A stretch of DNA of 61,808 nucleotides, taken from Macrostomum lignano. Taxonomy: Eukaryota. The stretch's first letter is position 1, and each line of letters begins with the position of its first letter. Shown in pieces: positions 13,183-61,808 of this stretch. The notes below the pieces were generated by a model, which did no database searches, was not told where the DNA came from, and saw only the letters and a program-made list of their open reading frames with translations. The stretch covers positions 1-61,808 of the forward strand of contig NIVC01002855.1 in NCBI GenBank assembly GCA_002269645.1. The letters run 5' to 3'. The translations under genes were made by a program, and so were the position numbers.

Positions 13183-16100
13183 CTACCGCACACCACTGGA
13201 ATCTACACTGGACAAGGGAGAGCAGAACTTATCCTGCAGACGACTGAGAAGGCGCAAAGTCGAATCTGAGCAGCGAGCTGCGGCGAGCCCGTCGGCGAGC
13301 TGCCTGACGGTGGGCGGAGCCGGCAACAGCCGCAGCGAATCCATGGCGGCGTCGGCCTCGAGCCGGCCGTCCTTCCGGGCCGCCAGCGCTGCATCGTTCA
13401 CGGCCTGCTCAGGGGCACCAAGGGCGCTTAGGAGCTCCGGCCACGTGTTGCGCAACGGCCCTGACCGGAAAATTGCCTGCAGAAGCTGAATCGGCGCAGG
13501 CTTCCCGGTGAAACGGCGCTGTTGCGGCTGCTGCGCCTCTGCCCTATCAAGGGGAGGAGCATCCACATCGAAGACCTTGCCCTGCACTAAGCCAACACGC
13601 AAGGCGGTGCCGAGCTGGTGCCGGAACTCGCTTGGCATGGCCGACGCCATACCGGAGTCACCGGGGTGTAGGCTGCTGCGAATGGTACCCGTAGTCCTAG
13701 TGATTGCATCGCCGTTGGTTGCCGCACAGCCACTGGCGATGTCTGCTTCAGCAGCTGGAGCTGCCGCACCCGCACTGTCACTCTCATCGGACTGCAACAG
13801 GGCGTACGCCAAGTCCTTCTCGCGACTGACGCCCTCACTCTGTGGAAGACCGAGCTCTTCGAGCTGCTGACACAGCCTGCTAAAGGGTGGGCGGAGGTTG
13901 GGCTCGCTTGCCAGACAGGACTGCATGATGTTAGTGACAGCAGAGTGCAGGCACTCGAATTCCTCGGCAGGCTGGCGAAGGCGCTGCGGGTAGGCGTTGA
14001 AGCAGTCTCGATCCAGGGCTTCGGTCAACGATTTCACGTGACGACCTTCGATCAGCATGTCTCGAAACTCGGCCACACTGTCACCGATGCGGTGCCTTAG
14101 CGAACTGCAGGTGAGGGCCTCAAATAAGCAGATGCCGAACAGGTATCGGTCAATAAATTCATCGGGACGGCGGAGGGGGTCGAGCAGCAGTTCTGGGGGG
14201 CGGCGCTCGATGCCAACCAGGTTCTCGAAGTGCAGCGTGTCTTGGCCAAGTGAGTCCTGCAAACTGCGGGACAGGCCGAAGTCCCCCAACTGTAAGGCAT
14301 TGGGGGGCATGATGATGATTTGCAGCATTAAAGTGAGAAGCCGAAATATTCAGCACAGGGACACTATTGGTAAGATTTAACACAAGAAATTTATTTGAAT
14401 TTATTTCTACGCTCGTAGGCTCGATTTTGTTTAAAACGCATTATTAAAAAGAAATAAATTCTATTAGTTAGAAATAAATTGGTACTTAGTAGTATCTCAC
14501 CTTCTGCACCTTCAATTTGCATATAACGCTAGTCTGTACAAGCAGCTCTGTAACAATCTAACTAACAATCCAGAAAAGGCATCTATCTACGAGGGATGTC
14601 CAAAAAGTAGTGATACTTTTAACCGTAGCTCTTGTTCTATAGCTTCCTGTGATTTAAAATTTTATGAATTGATAGCGGCAAATCTCTTCTACAGACTGCT
14701 TTTTGAATTTTTAAAATTGATACCAGAGAACAAAAGTTATACCCACAAAAGTAACAGTACCTGTACCATAGAGTTACACAAATTATAGGCTGAGCTTCAC
14801 GAGTTCCATGTCGAGTAAGCTTGGATGAATTGTTGATTTTGGCTTGTCCAACCTGTTAGCGATCTCTCTAATGGTCATTCGGGAGTCCTCGTCAAGAAGA
14901 TTCAGAATGGAGTCCGCCAGTACATCAGGTCAATGAACGCATGGCCGCCCCGTCCGATGCTGATCTGCCAAGTCAGCCTTCCCTCGCTGAACTGCTCCAT
15001 CCATCGATAAACTGTCATTTTGCTGACCACAGAGGATCCATGCGCAGAGCAAAGTTTTGCGTGAATTTCTGAGGCACTATGGCTAGCACCCCAAAGAGTG
15101 AAGATAGTACTTTGCTGAGCAACAACTGAGTGCACATCCATGAGTGTTGTCGAGTATGGGCAATGAAATCAATTGCAAAATGCAAGCTCCTCTGTTTGCA
15201 AGTAAAGTAATGAATTTAATGCTTTATTTTTCTGCGCATGATTCTGTGCATAGACAAATTTCAGTCAGTCACAGTGAGCATAATTTTGAAATTGGGCTTT
15301 GGTATTGCTTAAACAAGACATTTATCGATGCTTTCTTAATGAATAAGTGCAGAAGTCGACTATCATAAATTTTGATATAATTTGTGTAACTCTATGGTAC
15401 AGGTACTGTTACTTTTGTGGGTATAACTTTTGTTCTCTGGTATCAATTTTAAAAATTCAAAAAGCAGTCTGTAGAAGAGATTTGCCGCTATCAATTCATA
15501 AAATTTTAAATCACAGGAAGCTATAGAACGAGAGCTACGGTTAAAAGTATCACTACTTTTTGGACACCCCTCGTATATTGTTCACTTTTGTCTATGACCA
15601 AAATCATAACACAGACGAAACATCTGCGTCAGCCATAGACAGTTTTCTACTCCGGCAACAAGCATTGTACCATGATTTTTTTGCCTGGCGGGTACTCAAT
15701 CAATTTCTTTAATACCACAGACTACATTTAAGCCCGCATAAATCGAACAAGTCTGTCAAAACTTTAATATAATGCCCGCAAAATTGTTGGTTCAATCTCT
15801 TTGATACTGTACTGCAACTTGTTTCTAAACTGAAGTGCTGCATGAAAAGCTTCGTTTCATTAAATGAAATGTGTATGGTCGAAATGTGAGGCTTCGCCAT
15901 CACACCCACAGCGACCCACACTTTCCCCCCACTCTTTCATTCTTTCTCTCACTGCAGCGCCTTGCTGAGGCAAAAATGCCTATGATACAGTACCAGTGAT
16001 ACCCATGCTTTTTGGGCGTAAATTTGCTTTGCGGCGCCCTCAAATTCTCCATTCAAGCCCTAAGCCTTAGGGCATGGGTATTAACATACAATAGCTTTTT

Positions 16101-29282: not shown

Positions 29283-30577
29283 ATGAACGACCCACTGACA
29301 CCAGTTTTCTACAAAATTAACAAGCCTATTTTGAGTGATGATAGCACAATCAAAGCGACTCAGGTAAGAGTTCCCAGTCAGGAAAATCAGAATGAAACTA
29401 ATTTGGGTCCAGGTCAAACGCTGACATTCACATATAATGGATGTTCGTCTTTGGTCAGTGTCCACAGTCTAAGGAGCGGCTTCTATATGACGTTTCAATT
29501 CAAAACTAAAGGAGGCGCAGACGCCGCTCATGCTAATGATGATCTACACAATGCGGATGTCGCACTAACCAGTAATTTCTGGGCTTATATGTTCAAAGAG
29601 TTTAATGTGTCCAATGGAAGTACAGAGTTGGAAAGAATAGCAAACTTTGGTGTGGTCTATGATACCCACTGCTTGATTGAGAACCCGGATTTTATTCAGA
29701 TGGGGAGCGGTGCTGGATTCATCCCCAATGAACAGACAGGAGATGAGAATGACCCTGGTTACAAAAAGAGAAAGGAGAGATACAACTATGCTCTTGCTGG
29801 TGAGAACGATGCTGCTAAGAATCCGCTGTTTAGGTCTGTAGATATTTTTGTACCTTTGAGGTTTATGAGTGGTTTCTGTAATAGCTTTAATCGGTTGACA
29901 AGCAACTTCAGCTACACATTTAGACTGACTAGAGATGATCGGAACAGAGGAATTTGGTCGGGGGTCAATCATACATCGATGGAGATTAAGCTAACTAGCG
30001 TGGAGCTGTACTTAGAAATTATTGAGCCCAAGACTGCACTCAAAGCTGAATACTTGAAGGCGAGTGAGAAAGACATTGATGTTGCTTATACAGCTTATAT
30101 GTGCAGAGATGAGCGGAATGACGCAAGACACAATATTTGCATTAAAAAAGGCTCCTGTAGCAATCAAGGTACATTATCGTCACTATGAGGAGTACGACTA
30201 ATGTAGGTAGATATCTACATGGAAACGTTCGATCGATTCAACATGAGATCAGTGACAATTTATACCCTGCATTGCCACAAAATGGGAATTTCTCGGAGAA
30301 CAAGATTAGTAAGTTTTACAATGAACTGTCGGACCTGGCTGTCAAAGAGAATAACGGTATTGTTTTGACAACCTTGCAGTATAAAAAACTATAGCCAATA
30401 TTTGGTGTTGATGTGACTGCTAGACAAATGCCTACAGACAATAGCCCTGTTAACATTGTGACTAATATCGAGCGGAAAGAATTTGGTGCCGCAACGGCTG
30501 TTGATCTGTTTATTATCTATGCATTTGAGAGGAAAATCAAGGTCAATATGATCAATAACTCGTCTAGTAAAGTTTGA
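29283..30577 (+). pseudogene. Major capsid protein (double jelly-roll type), frameshift near 30150-30180 and TAG at 30392
   Basis: Begins ILSDDSTIKATQVRV...NLGPGQTLTF; contains DIFVPLRFMSGFC and, after the stop, PIFGVDVT...FIIYAFERKIKVNM. Position upstream of the penton fits. Confidence 0.8.
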
Positions 30578-30599
30578 ATAATTTTTTTTCAATAAAAAA

Positions 30600-31457
30600 A
30601 TGGAAGCCATAGCCGAAAGACTAAACAACATTGTTTCACACTCTAAGGAGAGCATTCCAATCACTGTAGCGGGTCGCATTACTGACTCAAACGGAATCTT
30701 CATTCAAAAATTGGAGCAACCACTTCGTTTGGATCCCGAGGCGAATTACCACGTCTATCTCAATGATTTCACTGGGTGGTCAAATGTTCCCAATGTGACA
30801 GCGGAAAATAACAAGTTTTATTACAAATGGAAGCGTACTACAACAGAGGTTGTGATATTTCCTGTCAGCACACAGAGCGTGGATACTTATAATTACTTCT
30901 TGGAGAACGTCTTCACTAAACGAAAGCATTTTGAGATACCGGATGAAAGCAAACCAGAAAATAAACTGTTCCCTGTTAGATTAACTTATGATCTAACTGT
31001 CATGAGAGTTGTCTTGCAAGTTCATAAGGACGCAGAGGTAGAGTTTAAAGATGGCACTTGGTATCGCGAGTTGGGATTTGAAAAGAGAGTTTATGGTGGC
31101 ACCACAGACCAAAGCCCGCCGCAGGCGCCTGGCACTGTTGCTGTGTCCCGGCTAATATCCGGTATGTACTTGGCGCCAAATATCGCTGACATTGTCAAAG
31201 GTTTGAATATATTAATTCGCAGCAATCTGAGCCATGATTGGATATTCAAGGGCAAACGAACCAACATACTTTTTAACATTTCAAACTCTGTTGCTGGTGG
31301 CAAAATGCTTGTGCAAAAGCCAAACCCCGTGAAAAGAGTGATTCTGAGTAAAAGAGAGATACATGAAATCGTTCTGCAGTTTGAAACAGAGGATGGAGTT
31401 GGTGTCGATTTTAACGGGGAAGAGTTTGTGCTAACAATTATTATTGAGAGAATGTGA
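30600..31457 (+). CDS. Minor capsid (penton) protein, intact ORF of 285 aa
   Basis: PLRLDPEANYHVYLNDFTGWSNVPNVTAENNKFYY ... IHEIVLQFETEDGVGVDFNGEEFVLTIIIE is the typical Polinton/adintovirus penton pattern. Confidence 0.8.
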   Translation: MEAIAERLNNIVSHSKESIPITVAGRITDSNGIFIQKLEQPLRLDPEANYHVYLNDFTGWSNVPNVTAENNKFYYKWKRTTTEVVIFPVSTQSVDTYNYFLENVFTKRKHFEIPDESKPENKLFPVRLTYDLTVMRVVLQVHKDAEVEFKDGTWYRELGFEKRVYGGTTDQSPPQAPGTVAVSRLISGMYLAPNIADIVKGLNILIRSNLSHDWIFKGKRTNILFNISNSVAGGKMLVQKPNPVKRVILSKREIHEIVLQFETEDGVGVDFNGEEFVLTIIIERM

Positions 31458-32269: not shown

Positions 32270-32635
32270 CAGGGGCGTCGCCATGAATTTAATGGTGGGG
32301 ACAAAGCCAAGAATTCGACATGTACATGTACATGACTAAATTTTGGTACTCATGCATTTTAGTGCCACAGGCACTCATTTTAGCGCCGCAGGCACTCATT
32401 TTAGCGCCGAAGACACTCATTTTAGCGCCACAGGCACTCATTTTAGCGCCACAGGCACTCATTTTAGCACCGCAGACAGTCATTTGGGCGCCGAAGGCGC
32501 TACAATTTGGCGCCCTGTAGAAAAATTACTGATTACCACAAGGTGGGGTGGAGGGGACAAAGCATTGGCATGTCCCCCCCAGAGCTTTTACTGGGGGGAC
32601 ATGTCCCCCCTGTCCCCCCGGTGGCGACGCGCCTG
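32270..32635. mobile_element. hAT-type MITE with internal 21-bp tandem repeat (~7x TTTTAGCGCCACAGGCACTCA)
   Basis: TIR CAGGGGCGTCGCCA/TGGCGACGCGCCTG. 8-bp TSD ATGGCAAG (32262-32269, 32636-32643). Confidence 0.88.
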
Positions 32636-45440: not shown

Positions 45441-45872
45441 TTGAGATTGGGTTTAGGTTTAAGAGAAAGTTTAATAAACCTCATAAAAATTACGACAAAT
45501 AACTTTCTTGAAGATTTGGCTAACGAACTGGAAATCCCAAACTTTAGAGGAATATTTATGAGGGACACTCTGCCTGATTTTCCTCTAAGAAAAGAATGCG
45601 GCATTATGAACTTTGACACCACCGATAAACCAGGATCTCATTGGGTTTGCTGGGTGATTGATCCCGATCGCAAGCACAAGTGTTATTACTTCGATAGCTA
45701 TGGGACGGCAGTACCAGAAGAGCTAAGAAATTATATGAAGCGAAAAAATAATAAAAAAATTTATCGCTCAGATTTTATTCTCCAAGGTCTTAGCAGTGAT
45801 ATTTGCGGTGAGCTGTGCATGACTGTTTTGTATGCAATGACTAAAACACGAAAGACCTACAAGGAAATTTAG
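45441..45872 (+). CDS. Adenain-like (C5) cysteine protease; start uncertain
   Basis: NFRGIFMRDTLP, GSHWVCW (His), YYFDSYG (Asp) and QGLSSDICGELC (Gln/Cys). Confidence 0.88.
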   Translation: MRLGLGLRESLINLIKITTNNFLEDLANELEIPNFRGIFMRDTLPDFPLRKECGIMNFDTTDKPGSHWVCWVIDPDRKHKCYYFDSYGTAVPEELRNYMKRKNNKKIYRSDFILQGLSSDICGELCMTVLYAMTKTRKTYKEI

Positions 45873-45897
45873 ATTCTTACCTGTGCTTCATAAGGGT

Positions 45898-46449
45898 TCA
45901 TTGTGCATATTTCATCGTCCTTCTTGCCGAATTTTTTGCCGAATTTCTTTCCGCATAATGTTGAAGAAAGTTATCGAGTTCATTTCTCAACTGACTCATG
46001 TCATCAGTACCGACCATGTTCAAGTTCATTCGAATTGATTGGTCATAAAGATCCTTAATGGTTTTGAACTCATCCTCTGAAATGAACTTATCCTCAGTTG
46101 CCCTTGAAACGTACCCTGTGATTGAAGTGTGCACCCCTTTCTCTTTTACTTGCTTCTCCTGTAGCTGTTTTAGTTTTTTTCGCCTGCTCCGCGCTAATGC
46201 TCCAGTAATTGCTGAAATAAGTCCACATGCAGCACCCACAGAGCCGAGCGGGATTGCGATTGGGGCTGTGATGACTGGCAACGTTGAGACAGCCGCAGCA
46301 GATCCAGATACCGGTAGAACAGACACAGATCCTAGAATCATATTGCTGTAGTCGAAAAATTTACAGTGGCTGTTATAGCGCTTAATTTTCTTTGTGTTGT
46401 GGAAAATGTTTTTTTCAATGTCATCTCGCATTTTTTGAATCTCCATCAA
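45898..46449 (-). CDS. Polinton hypothetical protein with hydrophobic hairpin and basic patch
   Basis: 183-aa ORF; two hydrophobic stretches followed by RSRRKKLK; homologues inside the complemented block. Confidence 0.6.
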   Translation of the reverse strand: MMEIQKMRDDIEKNIFHNTKKIKRYNSHCKFFDYSNMILGSVSVLPVSGSAAAVSTLPVITAPIAIPLGSVGAACGLISAITGALARSRRKKLKQLQEKQVKEKGVHTSITGYVSRATEDKFISEDEFKTIKDLYDQSIRMNLNMVGTDDMSQLRNELDNFLQHYAERNSAKNSARRTMKYAQ

Positions 46450-46679
46450 TCGAAATTGTTGAGAGTTACAAGTAATGACGGGGTAAAGTCGGTCTGAATA
46501 TTTACAGTAGGTGCATTCAGATTCGGTGCATCCAGGCTTGGTGCCAGGTTTTGTGTGTTCGAATTCGGTGCCATTGAGTTTGGTGCTGTCGGTATTTTAG
46601 GTTCAGCGTATTGAGACTGATCGTATAGAGAATTTTGTTGGGCCATTTTTTTCCCTAGAAAAATAAAAAAATTATAAAA

Positions 46680-47342
46680 CTATCCGGTTTGAAGATCTGT
46701 TTTCTCTTTGCTCTTGATTTTTGTCATTTCATCTGTAGAAATGACCGGACGAGCAGTAGATTCTGCTTCAACAGTATCAATATCAGGAAGATTGTGTACT
46801 CCCTCAAGACGACTGATTCTTCTCACCGATTTCTGCCATTCGGTAAAAACTAAATCTAAAAAGACTTTATTTGCAGTAATTCTTACTTTGATTTGATCAT
46901 GCAACGCTGTTGACTGAGTCATGAACTCTTCTAAATTACTCACTTTATCTGTGTTTGTGAAAACTCCTTCTTCAAGAATACGCATCCGTCTATCAGTGAA
47001 ATTTCTCAGAAGATTAATTGTCGATGTTAAACTTGTTTTTAAGCCGTTGATTTGCGAGACTGCCGAAGTTATTTCTGACCTAAGTTCATTAGTTGCGTGT
47101 GCAAACTGCGCATAAAGCTTATCACTTTCAAACTTCTGCCTGGCCACTTTTATGCGGAGATCTTCTATGTTTATCTGTAGCTGGTGCATGGAGCGCTCTA
47201 ATTGTTTCAGTCTGTTTTTATTCAGTTTGATCTCTAGGATCTTTTCGTCGCTGTTGATATATTGCCTGTCTAGGATGGATATTTGAGCTGATGTAAGAGT
47301 GCTGTTGCCAGAAATGGATTCACCTGCAAAATTAATAGACAT
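46680..47342 (-). CDS. Polinton coiled-coil protein
   Basis: 220-aa heptad-rich ORF; homologue in the complemented block. Confidence 0.55.
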   Translation of the reverse strand: MSINFAGESISGNSTLTSAQISILDRQYINSDEKILEIKLNKNRLKQLERSMHQLQINIEDLRIKVARQKFESDKLYAQFAHATNELRSEITSAVSQINGLKTSLTSTINLLRNFTDRRMRILEEGVFTNTDKVSNLEEFMTQSTALHDQIKVRITANKVFLDLVFTEWQKSVRRISRLEGVHNLPDIDTVEAESTARPVISTDEMTKIKSKEKTDLQTG

Positions 47343-47358
47343 CTTTTAATAGCAAATT

Positions 47359-48138
47359 TTAAATTACAGTTCTTTTTTCCTTGTTGATCATGACAAACTG
47401 ATAGGGTTGGTTCCACTTTTCGCAGCAGAGGTTAACAAATTCTTCTTGTGAAATCTTTCTGCTTGAGTTTTTTGTTGGATTTATAAAATAGGCAGGCGCA
47501 ATGACCTCATTGTAAAATCTTTTTAGCCTGTCCTGTGGAATTGTTGGAAACAGGAGAATCAGATTGCAGTTCCCATGAATTGTTTTGTTCTGGAGCTCGA
47601 ACATTTTTACAAATTGTTATGTCGCCCTCTTGTAAAATAGTTTTCTATCTGCTTCTGTGGGCCAGTCATACAATCATCAAAGACGATCAAATGCTTTCTC
47701 CCTTTTTCTAGCTCATCTGGTTGGGGTAGAAGTTTGGTTTTTGGATCAGCCTGTGGATCTCCATAGGTGAACACTTTGATGTTCTGCCATTTTTCATTGT
47801 CTTTGAGGTGCTTTGCATATTCAGCAGCTACAATTTCTGGGTTACTGTGAAGGTTTTGTTGGTTATTAAAACATTGAATAATGTCCTCTTTGTTCAGTTT
47901 GTTTTGCAATCCAGAAATCAACATTTTATACTCATCTTGATACAGTGTGGGAGAGTAGATGTGCAGAGTGTCATAGTTGATAAAGCCAGGTCTAAGAAGC
48001 ATGTTAAAGACTAAATGTTTTACCTGAACCTGATGAACCAACAACAATGCATCTGAAGTGACTCGGGATTGACTCGTGATGAGAAAACTTAATCTGATTA
48101 CGCGTCCAGTGAGGATTGAAGTCGTTTGAAAAGTCCAT
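47359..48138 (-). pseudogene. A32-like packaging ATPase, frameshifted after Walker A and with a deletion after RGRHNN
   Basis: GSSGSGKT, then a frame change to HLVFNML...LIVFDDCM...FTRGRHNN, then FELQNKTIHGNCN in a separate ORF. Confidence 0.88.
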
Positions 48139-49964: not shown

Positions 49965-51257
49965 ATGAACCATCCCCTGACACCGGTTTTCTATAAGATT
50001 AACAAACCCATTTTGAGTGATGACAGCACTATTAAAGCGACTCAGGTAAGAGTTCCCAGTCAGGAAAATCAGAATGAAACTAATTTGGGTCCAGGTCAAA
50101 CGCTGACATTTACATACAATGGATGTTCGTCTTTGGTCAGTGTCCACAGTCTAAGGAGCGGCTTCTATATGACGTTTCAATTCAAAACTAAAGGAGGCGC
50201 AGACGCCGCTCATGCTAATGATGATCTATACAATGCGGATGTCGCACTAACCAGTAATTTCTGGGCTTATATGTTCAAAGAGTTTAATGTGTCCAATGGA
50301 AGTACATAGTTGGAAAGAATAGCAAACTTTGGTGTGGTCTATGATACCCAGTGCTTGATTGAGAACCCGGATTTTATTCAGATGGGGAGCGGTGCTGGAT
50401 TCATCCCCAATGAACAGACAGGAGATGAGAATGACCCTGGTTACAAAAAGAGAAAGGAGAGATACAACTATGCTCTTGCTGGTGAGAACGATGCTGCTAA
50501 GAATCCGCTGTTTAGGTCTGTAGATATTTTTGTACCTTTGAGGTTTATAAGTGGTTTCTGTAATAGTTTCAATCGGTTGACAAGCAACTTTAGCTACACA
50601 TTTAGACTGACTAGAGATGATCGGAACAGAGGAATTTGGTCGGGGGCCAATCATACATCGATGGAGATTAAGCTAACTAGCGTGGAGCTGTACTTAGAAA
50701 TTATTGAGCCCAAGACTGCACTCAAAGCTGAATACTTGAAGGCGATTGAGAAAGACATTGATGTTGCTTATACAGCTTATATGTGCAGAGATGAGCGGAA
50801 TGACGCAAGACACAATATTTGCATTAAAAAGGCTCCTGTAGCAATCCAAGGTACAAGGCTCGTACATTATTGTCACTATGAGGAGTACGACTAATGTAGG
50901 TAGATATCTACATGGAAACGTTCGATCGATTCAACATGAGATCAGTGACAATTTATACCCTGCATTGCCACAAAATGGGAATTTCTCGGAGAACAAGATT
51001 AGTAAGTTTTACAATGAACTGTCGGACCTGGCTGTCAAAGAGAATTACGGTATTTTTTTGACAACCTTGCAGTATTAAAACTATATCCAATATTTGATGT
51101 TGATGTGACTGCTACAGACAATAGCCCTGTTAACATTGCGACTAATGTCGAGCGGAAAGAATTTGGTGCCGCAACGGCTGTTGATCTGTTTATTATCTAT
51201 GCATTTGAGAGGAAAATCAAGGTTAATATGATCAATAACTCGTCTAGTAAAGTTTGA
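49965..51257 (+). pseudogene. Major capsid protein, copy 2, with TAG at 50307 and further lesions
   Basis: Almost identical to 29283-30577. Confidence 0.8.
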
Positions 51258-51278
51258 ATAATTTTTTTTCAATAAAAA

Positions 51279-51550
51279 ATGGAAGCCATAGCCGAAAGAC
51301 TAAACAACATTGTTTCACACTCTAAGGAGTGTGATTCCAATCACTGTAGCGGGTCGCATTACTGAGTCAAACGGAATCTTCATTCAAAAATTGGAGCAAC
51401 CACTTCGTTTGGATCCCGAGGCGAATTACCACGTCTATCTTAATGATTTCACTGGGTGGTCAAATGTTCCCAATGTGACAGCGGAAAATAACAAGTTTTA
51501 TTACAAATGGAAGCGTACTACAACAGAGGTTGTGATATTTCCTGTCAGCA
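51279..51550 (+). pseudogene. Penton, 5' fragment; internal deletion removes the rest
   Basis: Matches 30600-30870, then jumps to sequence matching 31465 onward. Confidence 0.8.
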
Positions 51551-52283
51551 CTTGTCAGCACTTCAGACTTGTAAAATTACGATATAAGCCGCCAGGTACA
51601 ACCTTGTAGTTGGCTACTACAACTGCCTTATAACTTCAGCAAAGTTATAATAGCTGTCAAAATCGTTAATGACTACTCCATGTTTTTCAAACCAGTGGCT
51701 TTGGAGAGCTAGATTAATATTAGGGACATTGATATCAACGTAGGGCCAATATTTTCTCATGTACTCGCTGCATTCAAGTTTGCATCGGTACTTGCTCTTG
51801 TAATTAGGCTCGTGCGTTTTGTAATAAGAACCTGGAGAGACGATTGGAAGCATTTTTAGAGAAAATTTAGATTTTTTTTCGGAGGATGAGCACCCTGCGC
51901 TGATAATTTAAAGTCTTTGGGATCTGATTTCACCGCTTCGGATTGAATGTGGGGAGAAGAATGCAGATTATTTTCTGATTGTTTCGAAGATGCTATGGGT
52001 GGATGTCAGTGGATTATGTCAGTGTCAGTGAGCATAACAGGTGTTAATGGACACCTGTTATGCTCTGATTCTGTCAGGGATAATGCTCTGATTCTGTCAG
52101 GGATAATGCTCTGATTCTGTCAGGGATAATATGGATGGATTTAACAGGATTATGGAGGAGGTTTGTGAGCGAGTGCGGCCCCCTTTTTTTCTGATTCTGT
52201 CAGGGATAATATGAATGGATTTAATGGGATTGTGGAGGACATAAAAAATTTTGTCCCAAAAGCCCCCTCATGCCTTCTACTCT

Positions 52284-52379
52284 GAGGTGCAAATCTGTGA
52301 CGATATGGGCAAGCTAATGGATCGGATTCTTCGAGGCAAAACTGTTTTATCGATCAACATTCGTGAAATTAAGCTATAA
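52284..52379 (+). pseudogene. Probable penton C-terminus of a second Polinton lineage
   Basis: EVQICDDMGKLMDRILRGKTVLSINIREIKL resembles the I.DD.G....F..GK....L..R penton end. Short, so tentative. Confidence 0.45.
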
Positions 52380-52423
52380 ATAAAGAAGTTTTCTCGAATA
52401 AAAGACCGCAACTGATCAGCAAT

Positions 52424-52819
52424 ATGCCTTTAATCTTGATCGGTGGAGCTTTACCGGTATTTTCCGGTGCACAGCGTGGCAACGGCCTGTTTGGCAGCAT
52501 TGCCCGATTTGCCCTGCCACTTTTAAAGAGTTTTGGCAAAAATATTCTTCGCCACGGAACACGAGCCCTAGCTACAACAGTTAGCGACACACTCGATCAA
52601 GGCGGGAACTTGAAGGAAGCAGCATTGCGCAACTCTGTCCGGGCAGCTAAAGATGCTTTCAAAGACACAGTCACACAACGAGGTAGCGGCGGTGGTCAAA
52701 GGCGTAGAAAGAAGACTAACAAAAAAACGAGAAAAAGACTCCAGCATTCTGATATTTTGGACTCTATAAATAAAAAACCCGTGTCAATAATCGATCTGCC
52801 TATTAGAGCACCACACTAA
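52424..52819 (+). CDS. Polinton small virion protein (PX / amphipathic-basic type)
   Basis: QRGNGLFGSIARFALPLLKSFGK ... QRGSGGGQRRRKK: two (Q)RGxG protease-site-like motifs, an amphipathic helix and a basic tail. Confidence 0.72.
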   Translation: MPLILIGGALPVFSGAQRGNGLFGSIARFALPLLKSFGKNILRHGTRALATTVSDTLDQGGNLKEAALRNSVRAAKDAFKDTVTQRGSGGGQRRRKKTNKKTRKRLQHSDILDSINKKPVSIIDLPIRAPH

Positions 52820-52837
52820 GCCGCTGTTGAAAGAAAA

Positions 52838-53275
52838 ATGACTGAGTGCCTGTGTACAAAGTCGGAATTCGAGCTATTTGCTCCTCGAGCACACCTATTT
52901 GCTGCAATTAACGCCACCACTGAAGAAGTTCATCCTGTTGCCAGTGTTAAAAATGCCAGCGTGGTCGAATTTATGATTGTTGGTGGTGAGACGTTTATCG
53001 ATCTTAACGACATTGACCTCGAGATTAAGGCCCGCGTTAGGCAATGTAATGGCACAAATCTTGCTGCTGATTCGAATGTTGCGCCGGTCAATTACGTCCT
53101 TGAAAGCATGTTTAAAAACGTCACGTTGACAATCAACGGGACCCACGTAGAGTCGAGCAATAACAACCACGCTTACAAGGCCTATATTCGCACGTGTTTG
53201 AATTACGGACACGATTCAAAAACCAACCAACTGAGAATGATGGGCTACTACAACGGCTCCATTACTGCTAACGCT
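52838..53275 (+). pseudogene. Major capsid protein N-terminus of the second Polinton lineage, truncated
   Basis: CTKSEFELF...HPVASV...VEFMIVGGETFIDLNDIDLEIKARV...PVNYVLESMFKNVTLTING...HAYKAYIRTCLNYG is the classical Polinton PY/MCP start. Confidence 0.85.
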
Positions 53276-53364
53276 TTACCTATTCTAATTCTTACCTACT
53301 CGATACCTTCTTAACTAATGATGCTGCACCATTTATGACGAGGTGACAACAAACAATGAAATTC

Positions 53365-53558: not shown

Positions 53559-54519
53559 TTTTCTGATTCCCAAGCTAATATTGACTTTTAGGGATTAACG
53601 CATACCGCACAGGCCTAATTTTGCGCTCGATTCCTAAATTTTACACGTTGCTAATTGAGCGCAGGGCTACAACATAAAACTCAACATAATGGAAACGCGT
53701 GCTTAAATAAGCAAAAATCGGTATCCTACGGGGCAGCACGCGCAAAATTCGATACGCTAAGCGGGAGGGAATTAAGCAATCACGGTCAAATGGTCAATCC
53801 ACCACTCAGCGGGGGTTAAAAGGGAGACTGACTACTAGTAAATAGACCTTCTCGGTTCTGTAGTCTATGATTGCGTGAGTGCCAGCTAGAAAAGCGCTGC
53901 CCTAACCCTAACGGCCTAAGCCTCAACGCTAAGGGCATCAAAAACCGATCTCAGAGCCTAAAACCGTTTCCATATCCTCACGGGTAGTTGAGCATCGTTC
54001 AGGGCCTTATGAAAAAAACTTGCGAGCTCGAGGCCTCATGAAAAGCCTAGCGCACTCAGTGCCTTAGTAAAACCCTTGGGCGTGTGTCTAAGTCTATTAT
54101 TACCGAGCCTATCTTCTATATAACATCTTCTATGTAACTGAATCTCTATATAACTAAGTCTCTCTATGACTGAGTCTCTATAGACTTAGGGATAAACTTT
54201 GTAGAATTCTTTGGGAAGCTCTCCTATAGATATCTTCGACGCGATGATCTGGGTTTGACTTCTAGCAGAAAAAGAGAACAGAAGAGAACAGAAAAAGATA
54301 GACAAAAGCCAGACAAAAAGACAAACAGGTAAACGGCGGGATAGATAGATAAGCCTCAAGTACAGAGAGACATAGAGACCGTAAATTCCTGAAGCAAAGA
54401 GAGCGTGCCGCCCTCAGACTTTCTCATTCTGGGCTTGGGACCAGACAACGGCGTCTTTACGGCCCATTGTTTTGTTGCCTAGGTTGTCCCTCTTTTAATC
54501 AATCAAAGATAGTGAGAGA

Positions 54520-54627
54520 TTTATTGATTTGAATAAATCTCAATCTCAATCAAGGACTGATTAATTGAGTGATAATCAGTCAATCAGTTAACCAGTCAAT
54601 CAGTCAGTCAATCAATCAGTCAATCAG

Positions 54628-54694
<67 letters not shown>

Positions 54695-54740
54695 GTCAAT
54701 CAGTCAATCAGTCAATCAGTCAATCAGTCAATCAGTCAAT

Positions 54741-54794
<54 letters not shown>

Positions 54795-54870
54795 GTCAAT
54801 CAGTCAATCAGTCAATCAGTCAATCAGTCAATCAGTCAATCAGTCAATCAATCAATCAGTCAATCAATCG

Positions 54871-54902
<32 letters not shown>

Positions 54903-54935
54903 CTCAATCAATCAGTCAGTCAATCAATCAATCAA
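54520..54935 (+). repeat. (TCAA/TCAG)n microsatellite
   Basis: About 100 tetramer units. Confidence 0.97.
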
Positions 54936-55270
54936 TGTTTTGTTGCCTATGCTGTTCCTATTTTGTCCTTATTTACCCCCTATCTTGGGCCGCCCCCGTG
55001 GCCGACCCACGGGGCCCACCCCCCTACCCCGATTTTTTTCTCGAAAGAGTTAAAGTTTTGTTACAATTAAATTTACAGTTTACAATTACAATTACAGTTA
55101 ATTTTTTTGTAATTTCGATAGGTTATCTGCTAATTATTCGAAATCAATCAAATCGGTCACTTTCGCTTCAACGCACGCCTTGTTGGCATAGTTTTTTTAT
55201 AACAGTAGCAATGATAGCAATGTGCGTATTCGTGCCATTCGTGCTCGCGCTCGGCCGGTTGTAGCGCCTG

Positions 55271-55633
55271 CTTCTTCTTCTTCTTCTTCTTCTACGCAGC
55301 CCCCGCGTCGCCGCTGTCCGGCGGCTGGGGGGGAGGGCGACCTGCAGGCCGCCCCATCATCCTCAGATACCGGCAGATTCCGCCCGCGTCGTTGAGGTCG
55401 AGAGGGTGAGCAAGGCGGGCGGAGTCTCCGCGTGGACACTGCTGCAGGAGGTGCTCTTCTGTGTCTTCGTCTCCGCAGTCCGGACAGAGCGGAGTCTCGG
55501 TAAGGCCGATACGGTAGCGGGTGGCCGCGCAGGCTGTGCTGCAGCCGGCCCTCAATTGGCAAACCGCCACCGTCTCGCCACGAGTCAGGCCGCCGTAGCG
55601 CTTCCAGGGCGAGCTACGGTTCAAGAGCTTGAG
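55271..55633 (-). mobile_element. 5'-truncated LINE (3' end with CCHC knuckle and (AAG)n tail)
   Basis: QLRAGCS...CPDCGDEDTEEHLLQQCP; tail 55271-55293; 10-bp TSD GTAGCGCCTG (55261-55270, 55634-55643). Confidence 0.85.
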
Positions 55634-55722
55634 GTAGCGCCTGCTGCTGCTGCTGCTGCTCGCGCTCGGCCGGTTGTAGCGCCTGCTGCTGCTGCTGCTC
55701 GCGCTCGACCGGTTGTAGCGCC
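55634..55722 (-). repeat. (GCA)n-GGCGCTACAACCGG(T/C)CGAGCGCGA minisatellite; other blocks at 55241-55270, 59501-59611 and 60400-60542
   Basis: Same unit in all four blocks; source of the poly-A/S/Q ORFs in the track. Confidence 0.92.
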
Positions 55723-58700
55723 TCTCTCTCTCTCTCTCTCTCTCTCTGCACCGCACGTCTCGATGTCAGCTGGGCTGCAAGAGACGGGGGCGCTAGATGC
55801 GCCCCAGCCTGCGAAGAAGGTTGATGGTGAGGCTCGCGTCAACCAGGAGTGCGTCTTGTTCGCCGGGGCGGGCCGCGAACCCTCGTGGGCAGTCGAAAAG
55901 AATGTGCTGCTCGGTATCGCGAGCTCCGCAGTCCGGGCACACGTCGGAGTCGGACAGGCCGAGTCGGAGTCTAGTGGCGGCGGCAAGGTTGCTGCAGCCG
56001 GCGCGGAGCTGGTTGACCAGGACCTCAAATTTCCTCGCAAGGTTGGGAGTCTTGGCCATGGCGCCTTACGGCCCCAAAGCTCGAGGTCTAGATCACGTCT
56101 TTCCCGGCAGAGGTAAGCGCTGGCTGCCATGATGGGGACACCATGGTCGCTCTGATCTGCGGTCGCCAGTCTTGCCGCCCTATCTGCGCGTTCGTTCATG
56201 GGGATGCCGCAGTGAGCCGGTATCCAGGTGATGCGGATGGAGTGATCGCTACTCTGGTTCCAAATTTCGGAGACGATTCTGCTGTTGCTGCGCTGGCCCG
56301 CCATGATGTTGTAAATGGCCGCCTGGGAGTCAGTGAAGATGTCGATACATTGATGCTCTCTGGTATTCTGGATGGCAAGCAGTATGGCTTGAAGTTCCGC
56401 CTGGGTGCTGCTGCAGATGTTCCCTGCAGCGCTGGTGACGACCCGACCCCAGCATGGGGTGATGATCACCGCTGCGCTGGTGCCGTCCGATGTGCCGCCG
56501 GCGGCCGAGCCGTCAGTCCAAACGCTGACCGGGTGGGAGCCGCGCTCCTCGAGGTACCTCAGTGCAGTATCGCTGCGGAGGCTCTGGGGCTGGCTGCGGC
56601 TGCACTGCGTAGCCAAACTGAGGTCGAAAGTGATCGCTTCGTGGCGCCGTCCACGGCGGCTGGAGCTGCGGAGCGGGCTCCCTGGTGGGGCCGTTGAGCA
56701 GCCCCTGTCTGTCGAGCTCTTGGCTAACGCGGCGCCAGCAACCACGGTGTTCTCGCTGGTAGTCGTGGAGGACGGTGACGATGTCCTTTGGGTCTCTCGT
56801 GTTCTCTGGTGGCTCTCAAAGGCTCGATTCTTCAGTCGTGGTCGGTGTCCATTTTGGCGACCTGAAGTGCTGGAGTGTCCTGCGGGAGACGTAGGATTCT
56901 TTCTCTGAGCGTCGCACTACGTTGTAGCACCAGATGGCTGAAGGGCGACAGGTTCGCCACCGCAAGCAGGTCCCGGATGTGAGTAAGTTGGAGGCACCCA
57001 GTGATGATCCGCGCACAGCTGTGCTGTTGGCGGTCGATCAGCAGCTTAGAGCTGGCTGCAGTGAAAGACCCCCAGACCCCGCACGCGTAGTCGGCAACAG
57101 AGCGAACGGTGGCGATGTAAGCCATGCGGAGGATCTGACTGTCCGCACCGGCCGATCTGGTAGCGAGGGCAGTGAGAGGTCTTCTGCGGGCGGCCATCTT
57201 TTTACGGATCTTTGATGCATGGTGGCTGAAACTTAGGCTGTCGTCAAGAGTGAGTCCCAGGAAGGTCGGTGTTGGATCGAAGGCAAGCTTGTCGCCGTTG
57301 ATCTGGAGGTTCACTCTCCGTTTGCCGTTGTTTTCATTTGCCGCTAGAGTGAAGGTGGAGTAGCAGCATTTCCCAGTGCTAATGGAGACTTTCCAATCTC
57401 GGCACCAGTCGGCCACTGCATCCAGGGCTGGTTGGAGTTCTCTGGCACAGATGTCGAGTGTGCGAGCGGTCGCCAGTAAGGCCGAGTCATCGGCGTAGAG
57501 ACTGAGGCTAACCAAAGGGTTCGCCTCGGCGACTGCTTGGGCTAAATCGTTGACATAGATATTCCACAGCGTGGGCGCTAGCACACTGCCCTGTGGCAGA
57601 CCTTCGCGGAAGACTCTGTTCCGGCTCGTGGCGTTAACCCAGCGGACTGCGTTGTGACGGTCCGACAGGAAGCCGCGGATCCAGCGGATGATGCGCTTGG
57701 GGATGCCCATGCGGTGCATTTTGGCATACAGGGCCAGGCGCCATACTCTGTCATACGCTCGCAGAAGTCGAGGAGGCAGAGGATGCTGCGTAGCGCCGGT
57801 AGACTCTCGAGGCCGTCAAAAATGGCTTGGCAGACTCGCGCGAGCTGTTCCTCGGTGCTACGACCGCGACGAAAACCAGCTTGAGTGGGTGAGGCCGCCA
57901 CGGCTCTCCAGGTCATAATTAAGACGAGCCAGAACCATGCGCTCCGCGCACTTGGCGATGCAGCTGGTAAGTGCGACGGGGCGGTAGTTATCCGGTGATG
58001 CGGCGTCTTTCCCTTTTTTCTGGATCGGTATAATGGTGCCAATTCGCCAGCTGGTCGGTGTTTTGCCCTCCGCCAGGTGCGGTTGATGAGGCTGAGTAAG
58101 GCTTTGTCAGCGGCCGGCGGGAGCGTTTAAGCATCTCGTTGGAGACACCGTCGGTTCCCACAGCCTTCCCTGATTTGAGACATCGGATAGCGGCGCGGAG
58201 CTCGTCGATCTCGAAAGGGGCGTCCGGGCCGTCTGTTTGGGGGTCACCCATAGGCGTGGTGGCCTCGTTCGCTTCGTATCTGATGGCCGAGTCATTTTTC
58301 CGTCTGGGGACTCGGCTAACTTCGGCGTAGAGTTGGCAAAAGAGTTCGGCCTTCTCTTTGTTAGTGCGCGCTCCGGCGAGTCTGGGGAGGCGGCCCTGAC
58401 GATGGCAGCCGGGTCCGGAGTTTTAAAACCATCGCCTCTCAGTGCGCGGAGTAAGCCAAAAATGTCCGAGTCCTGGCTGAAATTTGCCGCTTTATCGAAC
58501 AGGAAGGCTTTTTTTCTCCCTCCGGAGACAGCCTGAGGCGTTGTGGCGGGCTCTGTTTGCGGCAATAATATTTTCTGGTGTCGGTTCTTTTTCTGCGGAT
58601 TGTCTCGCGGAACGTGTAGCTTTGGAGGCCTCTTCGCAGGCGTCGTTCCAGAACGGCAGGCGTCTCGTCTCTTTCCCGGAGCTGCGCGTGATGGCAAGTC

Positions 58701-60087
58701 TTGCTGCGTTCAGGATGGCTTCGGCAAGGCGTGTGGCCTCTGTGTTTAAGGTGGTGTCGTTGCGTTCGGATTCTGCCCAGGTATTTAGCGACTCCCTGAA
58801 GCTCCCCAGTCTGCCTTCTTATAGATCCAGCGTTTTTGCCCGCAGTGACGGGTCTTTTCCGGTGTTAGAGGCTGGGAGGCCGAAAGCGATCGGCAGGTGA
58901 TCGCTTCCCCAGTCTGGTAGCGTCTTCCAGGAGTCCGTGATGGATCCGGCAATGGTGCTACTACAGATGGTCACGTCTGGGCTACTGAGGCGGCCAGTAC
59001 TGGGCAGGTGCGTGTGTGGCAGGTGGTATTGCAGATGACGAGCCCATTGCGGGCGACCCACTCGTCGACGGTCTGGCCTCTGAGATCTTCATCAATGTGG
59101 CGGTCCCAGCTTCCGTGTGCGTTGTAGTCGCCTCCGAGGATGACTCTACCGGTAGTCGGAGATTGGTGAAGCTGGTTGCCAGGTGTTATCGGGACGTTGG
59201 CAGCTGGATGGTGGTGCATAGATAGATGCTATCACGATCGGCTGCTGTCCTTTGAGGCGGATGCGGCAGGTGGCAACGTCCAGGAGGTCGTGTTCTCTAT
59301 CGACTTTGAGTCTGTCGTACTGGACGTCATCGCGGACGAGCACCATAGTACCTCCCCGTCCTGTAATTTTTTTGTTGGTTTTGGATAGTGGACTGGGCTG
59401 GCGGTGGCGTGCTGGTGATTTCTCGTCCGGATGCACTGGTTGAACAGATTGGTTGTCTGCGCCATGCCATGGTGTGAAACGGACGCTGCAGGCGGTACGG
59501 CCTGCTGCTGCTGCTGCTCGCGCTCGACCGGTTGTAGCGCCTGCTGCTGCTGCTGCTCGCGCTCGACCGGTTGTAGCGCCTGCTGCTGCTGCTGCTGCTG
59601 CTGCTGCTCGGCTTGGTGCCACGTTGCAGGATGCGGTGACAGTGGTCGGCCATGAATAATCTCTGTGCGGCCACAGCTAGATAGGCTTGTGCGTACTCAC
59701 GTGCCTGCAATTGGTGCTCCTGCCCTTTATGGCTTTCCCTTATGCTCATTGAGCTCCGGGTGGTGGCTTCTGTAGTGCGAGCGGAGCTGCACGCACGCCT
59801 CTCTACACACACAGCACATGCCGTGACCAGCAGTAACAAATCGCTCGAAGGTCGCAAACCATAAAATATCCTCGACGCGATGATCTGGGTGTTGACTTCT
59901 AGCATGGCGTGCCAAGTTGTCTTTACGCATTTCCGCATCGCAGATGACGCAGTTTACATTGATTGATGGCATTATCACGCTGTTTGTTGAGGGTAAAAGC
60001 TTTCGCACAAATTATTTCGCAGTCATTCTACGGCACTCTTCTATTCTATGACACTCAAAAAACGTAGGAAGGGCCATAAACATTTTA
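55723..60087 (-). mobile_element. Near full-length LINE, I/Ingi-like group: C2H2 fingers - APE - RT - RNase H - CCHC, (AG)n tail, multiple frameshifts
   Basis: CVICD..LARHARSQH and CCVC..LRSHYRSHH; GGDYNAH and WGSDHLPI (APE); PQGSVLAP and YADD (RT); WTDGS, AELQAI, FTDSQAA and WIPAHCGI (RNase H); CPDCGARDTEQHILFDC. Flanked by GTAGCGCCT(G) on both sides. Confidence 0.88.
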
Positions 60088-61808
60088 GTAGCGCCTGTAG
60101 CGCCTGTCAATGCAGCGGAATTCCTATCAGCTCTATTTAAAACCACACACATAACAGCGGTCTCTTATAGCTGAGTAGCAAATTTCTGTCTATGGCCGTT
60201 ACTTAAGTGCCGGACTAGAAGCGAATAAAGCTAAGTAGCCCTAAGTAGCATTATAACCCATAGTTAATGCAAACCCTTAGTTCATTCATTCTTTCGTTCG
60301 TGACTCCAGGTCACTACAGCTTGGCAGTAGAAAAAGAGGCGCTGCTTACAATTATTTTTTATTTTACTTTCTTAGAAACAAGAAATCTATGTTTTGCTCG
60401 CTGCTCGCGCTCGGCGGTTGTAGCGCCTGCTGCTGCTGCTGCTGCTGCTGCTGCTCGGGCTCGGCCGCTTGTAGCGCCTGCTGCTGCTGCTGCTCGCGCT
60501 CTGCTGCTTGTAGCGCCTGCTGCTGCTGCGCTGCTGCTCGCGCTATTTGCAAAGCAGAAACCCCACAAATTCTGATGAAGATGAGGGCCGGTTTGAAGAT
60601 GGGGCTTCTATGGGGCTATGCACACCTTTGAGAGGTGCCTCGCACGCTTGTAGATGGGGCTTTTAGGAGGGGAATCGCACGCTTTTAAGAGGGTCTTTGT
60701 ACACCTTTGTTGAGGGGCCTCGCACGAGATGCCAATGCTTACGGGGGAATCACTTAAATATTATCAATAGTAGGCTCACGGTGGCATCGCTTATAGATAG
60801 ATAGATATCAAAATTTTTACTTGTACTTTCTTTAAAAAACGGCCATGACGCATTTAGACACTTATATTGCTTCTTGCGGTAGCGAAAATGCATGTCAATC
60901 TTTTCAGTGGGGTGAGATTTACTTAAATTTTAACTTGCGAAAAATGAGCCGATATGTAAAAGGTGACAAAGCAGGGATAGGAGTGGGTATAACAGTGTGG
61001 ACAGCAGCGATTTACAGCGGCTGACTCATCATGCGCGCGCGGGGGCCGCCAATCTTGTGGAGGGTCTCATTAACTCATTAACGCCCGCAAAGTATGGGTA
61101 TTACTATTATTTGCATAGACATTTGTGTCCTTGACAAAGACGTGGAACAAAATTAGCATTAACTGCCCGCTAATTTGCATTAAAGTAAGTTTGACTCCTG
61201 CAAGCCGGGCTTAAATGTAGTCTATGGCATTAAAAGGCAAGAATAAGTGCCAGCGGGCACAAAGGTCATGGTACAATTATGGGGTGGGTGGGCGCGCGTT
61301 ACTTCTGCCCAATTTTGGTATATGGACAGTTAATATGTACAGCTAATTCTGCGTACACCAATGCATTGAAACTTGGGGGCTGGGCGCTTATGCGTACAAC
61401 AACGGCTACGGTGAAGCGCTAATTATGCGTACTATATTGTACTGGCATATCGCTTCTGTACGACACAGTGCACACTGATTACATTTATAATTAGATTTAC
61501 ATGAGAGTTACATGCATGAATATCTCACATAATGACTTACATGAATCGAGGGTCTGGACCAATTAGAAGAGGTCTAGTGCATTTAGATAGGCGTTGAATT
61601 TGCATTTGCTCTGACACCCACCTCACCTCCAAAATCAACACTTATCTGCACGTTACGTAGTGGCTGTAGCCTTGGCTTGGCAGAGTCCCTGATGAGGGTA
61701 ATGGAGCCATGGTGGTGAGCTTGTGCCACCAAAGGCAGATGAGACAGTTTTTTGGACCCAGTAGTCCACTGACTGCTCTTCCAACTTGGGCCACCATTTC
61801 CTTTGGTT

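Follow-up and report, generated by a model that had tools for sequence, protein, structure and literature searches.

The 61,808-nucleotide contig NIVC01002855.1 of the flatworm Macrostomum lignano (assembly GCA_002269645.1; the whole 61.8-kb stretch is called the window below) carries a 39-bp minisatellite that is interrupted by two 5′-truncated long interspersed nuclear elements (LINEs), a short one at 55271-55633 and a long one at 55724 to about 59499. Both lie on the minus strand, as do the other features of the array, and sequences are written in that orientation unless the plus strand is named. The two LINEs represent distinct but related families, and their 3′ junctions fall 1-3 nt apart in the repeat unit, the offset depending on how an ambiguous AG is assigned. 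We tentatively interpret this as a moderate target preference, in which a nick preference of the endonuclease and pairing between tail and primer act together at the AG-containing boundary of the unit, a reading to which we give somewhat less than an even chance. The original prediction for this locus had gone further and held that two different LINEs had inserted at one 10-bp motif, with all four junctions in the same phase of the repeat. Three of these junctions, namely the 5′ and 3′ junctions of the short LINE and the 3′ junction of the long LINE, are real, whereas the 5′ junction of the long LINE had been placed at 60088, about 590 bp too far upstream, so that the common phase of all four is lost.

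Two related LINEs in one minisatellite

The minisatellite unit consists of (CAG)5-6 followed by GCGCTACAACCGGYCGAGCGCGAG (in full, (CAG)5-6 GCGCTACAACCGG(T/C)CGAGCGCGAG), and about ten units are present in total. Pattern searches located them in four blocks, M1 to M4 (Table 1), and Tandem Repeats Finder (TRF) reported the 39-bp repeat at 55644-55723 (97% matches), 59500-59596 (100%) and 60439-60529 (94%). All 10 exact copies of the 10-mer CAGGCGCTAC in the window are on the minus strand within 55261-60519. When one mismatch was allowed, 15 matches were obtained in the window against 2.2 expected; those at 32494 and 49548 were discarded as unrelated sequence. The array is in phase on either side of both inserts, the T/C variant of the unit runs T,T in M2, T,C in M3 and C in M4, and M2 and M3 are 98.8-100% identical, as expected if two insertions later entered an array that was originally continuous.

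On the 5′ side of the short LINE, the array reads ...(CAG)6 GCGCTAC and ends in CAGGCGCTAC; on the 3′ side, the tail is followed by CAGGCGCTACAACCGGCCGAG..., which brings a second copy of CAGGCGCTAC. Removal of the short LINE together with one copy of CAGGCGCTAC restores a perfect minisatellite unit, and the insert is therefore flanked by a 10-bp target-site duplication (TSD) of CAGGCGCTAC, as had been predicted. The TSD is 12 bp long if the AG common to tail and target is counted, and in a perfect tandem array a 10-bp TSD is formally indistinguishable from a 29-bp target deletion. The 3′ junction of the long LINE was likewise confirmed: (AG)13 at 55722-55747 gives way to (AG)GCGCTACAACCGGTCGAG..., that is, (AG)GCGCTAC, and because the first CT is shared with the array, this junction is ambiguous by 2 nt.

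Considering that the array runs in phase on both sides of the inserts and that the short LINE has a TSD, the motif belongs to the target and not to the termini of the elements, as the T,T, T,C, C order also bears out; the original prediction had named the opposite finding as one that would refute it. If the motif or the minisatellite had instead been carried by the elements, as a 3′ terminal repeat or by 3′ transduction, the flank would not be the target, and the (C)AGGCGCTACAACCGG that follows the tail in both elements would be explained. However, both elements have the in-phase array ahead of their truncated 5′ ends as well, the short LINE has a genuine 10-bp TSD overlap, and the relatives described below end at microsatellite tails with no such sequence beyond, and we regard this explanation as very improbable.

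No nucleotide similarity was detectable between the short and the long LINE; their last 60-80 residues share 50-58% amino acid (aa) identity, and their tails differ. The short LINE, in which the stop codon TAG (55292-55294) directly adjoins the (AAG)7 tail, has lost the regions for the apurinic-type endonuclease (APE) and RNase H through truncation but has kept the C-terminal CPDCG...H...C. The long LINE retains part of the APE, the reverse transcriptase (RT), RNase H and the Cys-His C-terminus. Between them they display the features of the APE-type I group of elements that lack long terminal repeats (non-LTR; APE N-terminal to a non-LTR RT, then RNase H, then Cys-His) and the hallmarks of target-primed reverse transcription (TPRT), namely a 3′ tail, 5′ truncation and a TSD. 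The earlier claim of two different LINEs of an RNase H-bearing lineage nested in one minisatellite is upheld, and the sequences are best described as two distinct but related families of one I-group lineage. The long LINE shows at least 7 frame changes in the alignment to its relatives and several in-frame stops, and this copy is evidently dead. The best Protein Data Bank (PDB) matches of its RT were the L1 ORF2p and R2 RTs, and the only PDB matches of its APE were the endonucleases of the site-specific elements TRAS1 and R1Bm, which were weak (E 0.003-0.016).

A protein search with the RT and RNase H regions yielded 207 LINE-like homologues, and the best relatives (38-42% identity) came from marine and other ENA assemblies, a barnacle and an acoel. 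The C-terminus of the short LINE shared 36-45% identity with the C-termini of these relatives (tblastn). No same-family copy was found in the protein collection, where RT plus RNase H reached 42% at best and the short C-terminus and an open reading frame (ORF) upstream of the long LINE gave nothing. Exact look-ups of the window ORFs in the contig index gave no match, and of two scans of the metagenome collection for the minisatellite, the first gave 0 matches and the second 7 isolated 19-mers due to chance, in unrelated contigs of mostly bacterial appearance. In the window, there was no further copy of either family and no further (AAG)n or (AG)n tail.

Six relatives were viewed in their context, and in each of them the stop codon is followed, after a few tens of nt, by a terminal (AAG)n or (AG)n, indicating that these tails are a trait of the lineage. 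Their 3′ flanks (ATAACG..., TGGCCG..., TACAGC..., GCTCTG..., TAAAAT... and GACCGC..., the last nested in a LINE) are unrelated to each other and unlike CAGGCGCTAC; the same tail types in unrelated flanks indicate that the lineage as a whole is not site-specific. Relatives with a matchable 5′ flank have TSDs of about 11-19 bp, and just 5′ of the TSD their targets show purine-rich microhomology to the tail, such as AAGAA (relative L001), AG (L003) and GG (L011). One relative with an (AG)9 tail (L013, 4373-5543) has itself interrupted a second LINE copy within its RNase H region; nesting of one LINE in another thus occurs in that genome too.

The full-length relatives L002 and L003 encode, in order, a 2A-like NPGP peptide, a PHD-like finger, an APE N-terminal segment (LxxLQLNCNxL...LLQETRL), a Pro-rich stretch of about 130 aa that splits the APE and holds a Cys cluster (...GCxGRRxCTDxR...), and then GGxxxLVR. 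The 2A-like peptides upstream of the called ORF2 in these relatives read LLLRAGDVETNPGP and LIMRAGDIETNPGP, and L003 has two PHD repeats, 2A-less and 2A-bearing. The relatives found here thus combine 2A, PHD, APE, RT and RNase H. The architecture and the 2A plus PHD N-termini of the relatives point toward the Ingi/Nimb/I clade; as regards the R1 clade, the APE gave the weak matches to TRAS1 and R1Bm, and the N-terminal region of the relatives carries 2A plus PHD with no CCHC gag.

The 5′ end of the long LINE and the sequence upstream

LINE-coded sequence begins at 59499-59502, inside the APE, where it adjoins the 2.9 perfect units of M2 with a GGC microhomology at 59500-59502. The APE covers only positions 67-225 of the 225-position Exo_endo_phos profile. 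Its first coded residues, GRTACSVRFTP, align with an internal GRRACTDKRPP of the relatives, and GRGGTMVLVRDD follows 42 residues later. The APE N-terminus and the 2A/PHD region of the relatives had no match in 59499-60394. By these alignments, the long LINE has lost the whole of ORF1 together with some 130 codons of ORF2. With the truncation inside the APE, the array breaks off after CAGGC at the local 5′ junction, five bases earlier than at the short LINE, and the TSD is only 0-4 bp; the additional region that the original prediction had assigned to the element is not LINE sequence. This junction also forms a near-palindrome, CAGGC(G)GTAC(G)GCCTG (59489-59504), of which one half is target (GCCTG) and the other LINE coding sequence (GRTAC); it creates an inverted copy of the motif with one mismatch on the plus strand and probably arose by microhomology joining.

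Upstream of M2 lie a 476-bp block (Z), a tandem pair of 10-mers and an AT-rich block (U1). Z is unrelated to the LINEs. It was considered as ORF1 or the 5′ part of the long LINE and rejected, as it showed no similarity to the 2A/PHD/APE N-terminal region of the relatives and only generic matches to C2H2 fingers. U1 is not repeated elsewhere in the window, and a search for a SINE or tRNA origin found none. No other copy of Z or U1 was detected in the window except for a 39-bp, 95% match between 59866-59904 and 54230-54267. This match, which lies inside the C2H2-like ORF of Z, joins two places 5.6 kb apart in identical orientation, and the similarity ends at its edges. The last 12 nt of Z, CACCAAGCCGAG, resemble the array sequence CAACCGGCCGAG at 9 of 12 positions, and the entry from M1 into U1 falls inside a CAG run; the phase of the array is thus roughly kept across U1 and Z.

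At 60088-60106, the 10-mer of the short LINE TSD occurs twice in tandem, and the match to the array stops at the edges of this pair. The chance of that specific 10-mer within 783 bp is about 0.001. The pair could be a relic of further breaks at the two reused positions, which would speak for a site-specific endonuclease, or it could be the TSD of a 5′-transduced unit. In the latter case, Z, array units and an already truncated LINE would have been retrotransposed as one read-through transcript from elsewhere, bounded by CAGGCGCTAC (60088-60097) and AGGCGCTAC (55715-55723), with a TSD of 9-10 bp identical to that of the short LINE. Such an event would explain the 9-10 bp direct repeat (C)AGGCGCTAC around 55724-60087 and one copy of the isolated 10-mer, and a TSD of 9-10 bp suits the lineage (10-19 bp) better than one of 0-4 bp. 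On the other hand, it requires a second, unseen source locus, the transduced Z is not LINE sequence, and the second tandem 9-mer is left over. M2 is moreover 98.8-100% identical to M3, shares the T variant with it and is in phase with it across the LINE; one continuous array explains this simply, whereas under transduction the continuity of M2 and M3 becomes a coincidence unless the element is site-specific. We consider 5′ transduction unlikely and favor the simple model of a once-continuous array in which the 10-mer is a break relic. Under either reading, 59499-60087 contains no LINE-coded sequence.

Table 1. Layout of the minisatellite locus, ordered by position in the window
Feature	Position	Strand	Remarks
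Minisatellite block M4	55241-55270	minus	Partial unit that closes the array on its 3′ side; contains the downstream TSD copy CAGGCGCTAC (55261-55270)
Short LINE, (AAG)7 tail	55271-55291	minus	Sequence read directly
Short LINE, body	55292-55633	minus	5′-truncated; last 114 ORF2 codons (CPDCGDEDTEEHLLQQCPRG motif), frame intact
Minisatellite block M3	55634-55723	minus	2.3 units; upstream TSD copy CAGGCGCTAC at 55634-55643
Part of M3, 3′ flank of long LINE	55715-55723	minus	(A)GGCGCTAC
Long LINE, (AG)n tail	55724-55747	minus	TRF: (CT)13 at 55722-55747
Long LINE, body	55748-59499	minus	5′-truncated, decayed; weak zf-RVT match
Long LINE, 3′ untranslated region	55748-55792	minus	About 45 nt
Long LINE, Cys-His C-terminus	55793-56059	minus	ORF ends at 55793
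Long LINE, RNase H	about 56090-56640	minus	Pfam RNase_H 1.7e-17
Long LINE, RT	about 56835-58221	minus	Pfam RVT_1 2.2e-34
Long LINE, partial APE	about 58806-59498	minus	Exo_endo_phos_2 1.3e-12, Exo_endo_phos 1.8e-06
Minisatellite block M2	59500-59611	minus	2.9 units, copies match 100%; ends ...(CAG)5GC at LINE 5′ end
Block Z	59612-60087	minus	476 bp; unrelated to the LINEs
ORF in Z	59727-60008	minus	93 aa, two C2H2-like fingers; relatives are generic multi-finger proteins only
Tandem 10-mer	60088-60106	minus	CAGGCGCTA CAGGCGCTA C; the 10-mer of the short LINE TSD in non-array surroundings
Block U1	60107-60394	minus	AT-rich, between M1 and the tandem 10-mer
Minisatellite block M1	60395-60545	minus	About 3.8 units that have diverged further (about 92% identical to M2/M3)

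Insertion points and a possible target preference

Calculated post hoc and with no account taken of the clustering of mobile elements, the chance that both of two random insertions land in the 234-bp array is about 1.4e-5 under uniform insertion, that of a second insertion within 240 bp of the first is about 0.008, that of two 3′ junctions falling within 3 nt of each other in a 39-nt unit is about 0.18, and that of an insertion both near and in phase is about 0.008 x 0.18. The tandem TSD-like 10-mer at 60088-60106, which reuses the two break positions, was also counted in favor of a target preference.

According to the moderate-preference reading, the minisatellite would have received two independent TPRT insertions, both 5′-truncated, from RNAs with (AAG)n and (AG)n at their 3′ ends. 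The first nick, on the bottom strand, would in both cases have been made at the boundary between the CAG run and GCGC, corresponding on the plus strand to 5′-...GTAGCGCCTG(CT)^GCTG for the short LINE and 5′-...GTAGCGC(CT)^GCTG for the long LINE. Each nick would leave a plus-strand ...CT-3′ primer end able to pair with the AG of the tail. The microhomology between tail and target in the relatives and these CT-3′ primer ends support the idea that pairing of tail and primer helps to fix the insertion point. The second nick of the short LINE would lie 10 nt downstream, after CTAC, and generate the TSD CAGGCGCTAC, and the truncated cDNA of the long LINE may have been joined after CAGGC via the GGC microhomology, leaving a TSD of 0-4 bp. 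As 2-nt ambiguities remain, the nick positions are put forward as inferred ones, and so are the part played by microhomology and any preference at all; we do not claim a proven dedication of the elements to the 10-bp motif.

Several points weigh against even this moderate preference. There are only two events at one locus, chosen after the fact, and their 3′ junctions are not identical but 1-3 nt apart, an agreement that by itself has the probability of about 0.18 given above. Since the (CTG)n run of each unit contains a number of CT^G sites that are equivalent, the phase agreement is weak evidence for recognition of GCGCTAC. The TSD of the long LINE (0-4 bp) is short in comparison with the 10-19 bp of the short LINE and the relatives, the flanks of the relatives have no motif in common, and regions rich in transposable elements gather nested inserts without any specificity.

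Another reading is coincidence, with two ordinary, non-specific LINEs nested in one small array and their phase agreement due to chance or to the many CT^G sites. The probability of about 0.18 for that agreement, the selection of the finding after reading, the diverse flanks of the relatives, one of which (L013) is nested in another LINE, and the crowding of the window with other mobile elements are all compatible with it. We nevertheless consider it quite unlikely, given that the only two copies both lie within 234 bp of 61.8 kb, that the TSD-like 10-mer recurs at 60088-60106, and that both nicks fall at the single CAG-run/GCGC boundary and are not scattered along the run.

At the other extreme, both families could be strictly dedicated to the minisatellite in the manner of R1/Tx1-type elements, with the bottom strand nicked just 5′ and the top strand just 3′ of CAGGCGCTAC. 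The TSD of the short LINE is exactly CAGGCGCTAC, the 3′ flank of the long LINE starts 1-3 nt from that point, and both LINE copies of the window lie within 0.4% of its length. The tandem 10-mer between unrelated sequences would mean that the positions ^CAGGCGCTAC^ served as breakpoints on as many as three further occasions (with the above chance of ~0.001 for the 10-mer), and the only PDB matches of the APE, weak as they are, are to site-specific endonucleases. Yet the real 5′ junction of the long LINE is not at CTAC^, six relatives have the same tails in unrelated sequence, and the tandem 10-mer may have another origin; strict dedication seems unlikely. The fullest form of this idea is that two Ingi/Nimb-like, RNase H-bearing families evolved true specificity for ^CAGGCGCTAC^ of a host minisatellite in a free-living flatworm, with a 10-nt staggered cut, and hit this safe harbor repeatedly. 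The isolated pair of 10-mers at 60088-60106 and the direct repeat of 9-10 bp that encloses 55724-60087 would then count as further footprints of the same endonuclease; we regard this as doubtful.

As a whole, a minisatellite-specific family is plausible but unproven, as a single locus cannot prove a preferred landing site, and nothing supports the earlier suggestion that the LINEs had spread the repeat. If the preference is true, target specificity would have arisen independently in an I-group lineage outside R1, and a minisatellite would serve as its safe harbor. The fragmentation of the array would then also be explained, and endonuclease and target would form a tractable pair, its stagger defined as 10 nt, in a flatworm already open to transgenesis. 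If the preference is false, dead LINE fragments have simply nested here in the ordinary way, and the value of the analysis lies in the corrected anatomy, namely the 5′ end of the long LINE and the exclusion of 59499-60087 from it.

Genomic setting and comparison with known systems

The locus lies in a GC-rich island (57-61% GC, surroundings ~40%) of a window crowded with many other mobile elements. The source of the DNA is reflected in exons of an FLVCR-like major facilitator superfamily transporter (5900-6967, minus strand), which are 99% identical to Macrostomum lignano proteins. At 300 bp from the minisatellite array, an (AATCAATC/AATCAGTC)n microsatellite with an 8-bp unit occupies 54574-54936 (45 copies, 92% matches). 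At 54407-54463 on the minus strand, a sequence resembling a type-P1 twister ribozyme scored 41.5 bits (E 4e-08 to 1e-06), which does not reach the Rfam gathering score of 67.2; the conserved core (UAA, GGUCCCAAGCCC, AAAG and GAGGG) and the outer stems are kept, and one internal hairpin is absent.

Scans of single ORFs, made without assembly, detected Maverick/Polinton-like virus-type genes at 29283-31457, 45441-48047 and 50310-53314, among them a cysteine protease of the adenovirus type (Peptidase_C5, at threshold) and an ORF for a capsid protein of double-jelly-roll-like form. Near-duplicate ORF sets at 29283-30188 and 50310-50894 suggest two partial copies of such an element. A Tc1/mariner-like fragment with weak DDE_3 and HTH_32 matches was found at 1220-1886 (minus strand), and a 381-aa ORF with a protein kinase C-lobe occupies a GC-rich exon at 13183-14328 (minus strand).

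Target-specific non-LTR elements are concentrated in the early-branching clades with a restriction-like endonuclease (RLE), in Tx1 and in R1 (PMC4640811). The statement of the original prediction that specificity resides mainly in R1 and Tx1 is slightly too narrow, because relative site specificity is documented for Ingi-clade elements of trypanosomatids (ingi/RIME and L1Tc/NARTc), where a conserved motif beside the insertion site is attributed to the endonuclease (PMC3820030). In the Ingi clade, the APE is also preceded by a 2A-like NPGP peptide, and the order 2A-PHD-APE is described for other clades (PMC3708506). The lineage described here resembles the Ingi clade in being composed of APE-type, RNase H-bearing I-group elements and in the 2A-like NPGP of its relatives. 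In contrast to the Ingi elements, whose tails are of the poly(A) type and whose degenerate motif lies in unique DNA of protists, the two LINEs have a flatworm host, (AAG)n/(AG)n tails and a minisatellite target. A further difference is the PHD-like finger that the relatives carry between 2A and APE.

With the R1 clade (R1 and TRAS/SART), the two LINEs share membership of the APE-type I group and the C-terminal Cys-His. R1-clade elements also have precise, common 3′ junctions in repeated targets, in line with a safe-harbor logic, which the junctions 1-3 nt apart here may resemble. However, for the R1 clade, hundreds of copies and biochemical work on the endonuclease have proven the specificity (PMC1919474), as against two copies and weak PDB matches here. 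R1-clade elements further have a gag-like ORF1 with CCHC knuckles, in contrast to the 2A plus PHD N-termini of the relatives. Waldo and Mino, which belong to the R1 clade, are reportedly microsatellite-specific, as Kojima and Fujiwara are said to have described in 2004.

Ordinary 5′-truncated LINE insertions and L1-type 5′ transduction show the same 5′ truncation, microhomology at the 5′ junction (GGC here), variable TSD and possible carry-over of upstream host sequence. These are general behaviors of TPRT and not the mark of a family, and no difference from them is needed to account for the anatomy of the locus. In the Tx1 clade, Tx1L sits in the tandem PTR-1 repeats of the Tx1D transposon, and Kibi and Koshi are found in (TC)n/(TTC)n. 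Tx1-clade elements belong to the L1 group, without the RNase H and the C-terminal architecture seen here, but a LINE such as Tx1L lands at one defined position of a short tandem repeat unit, which makes it the closest precedent for a minisatellite-specific element.

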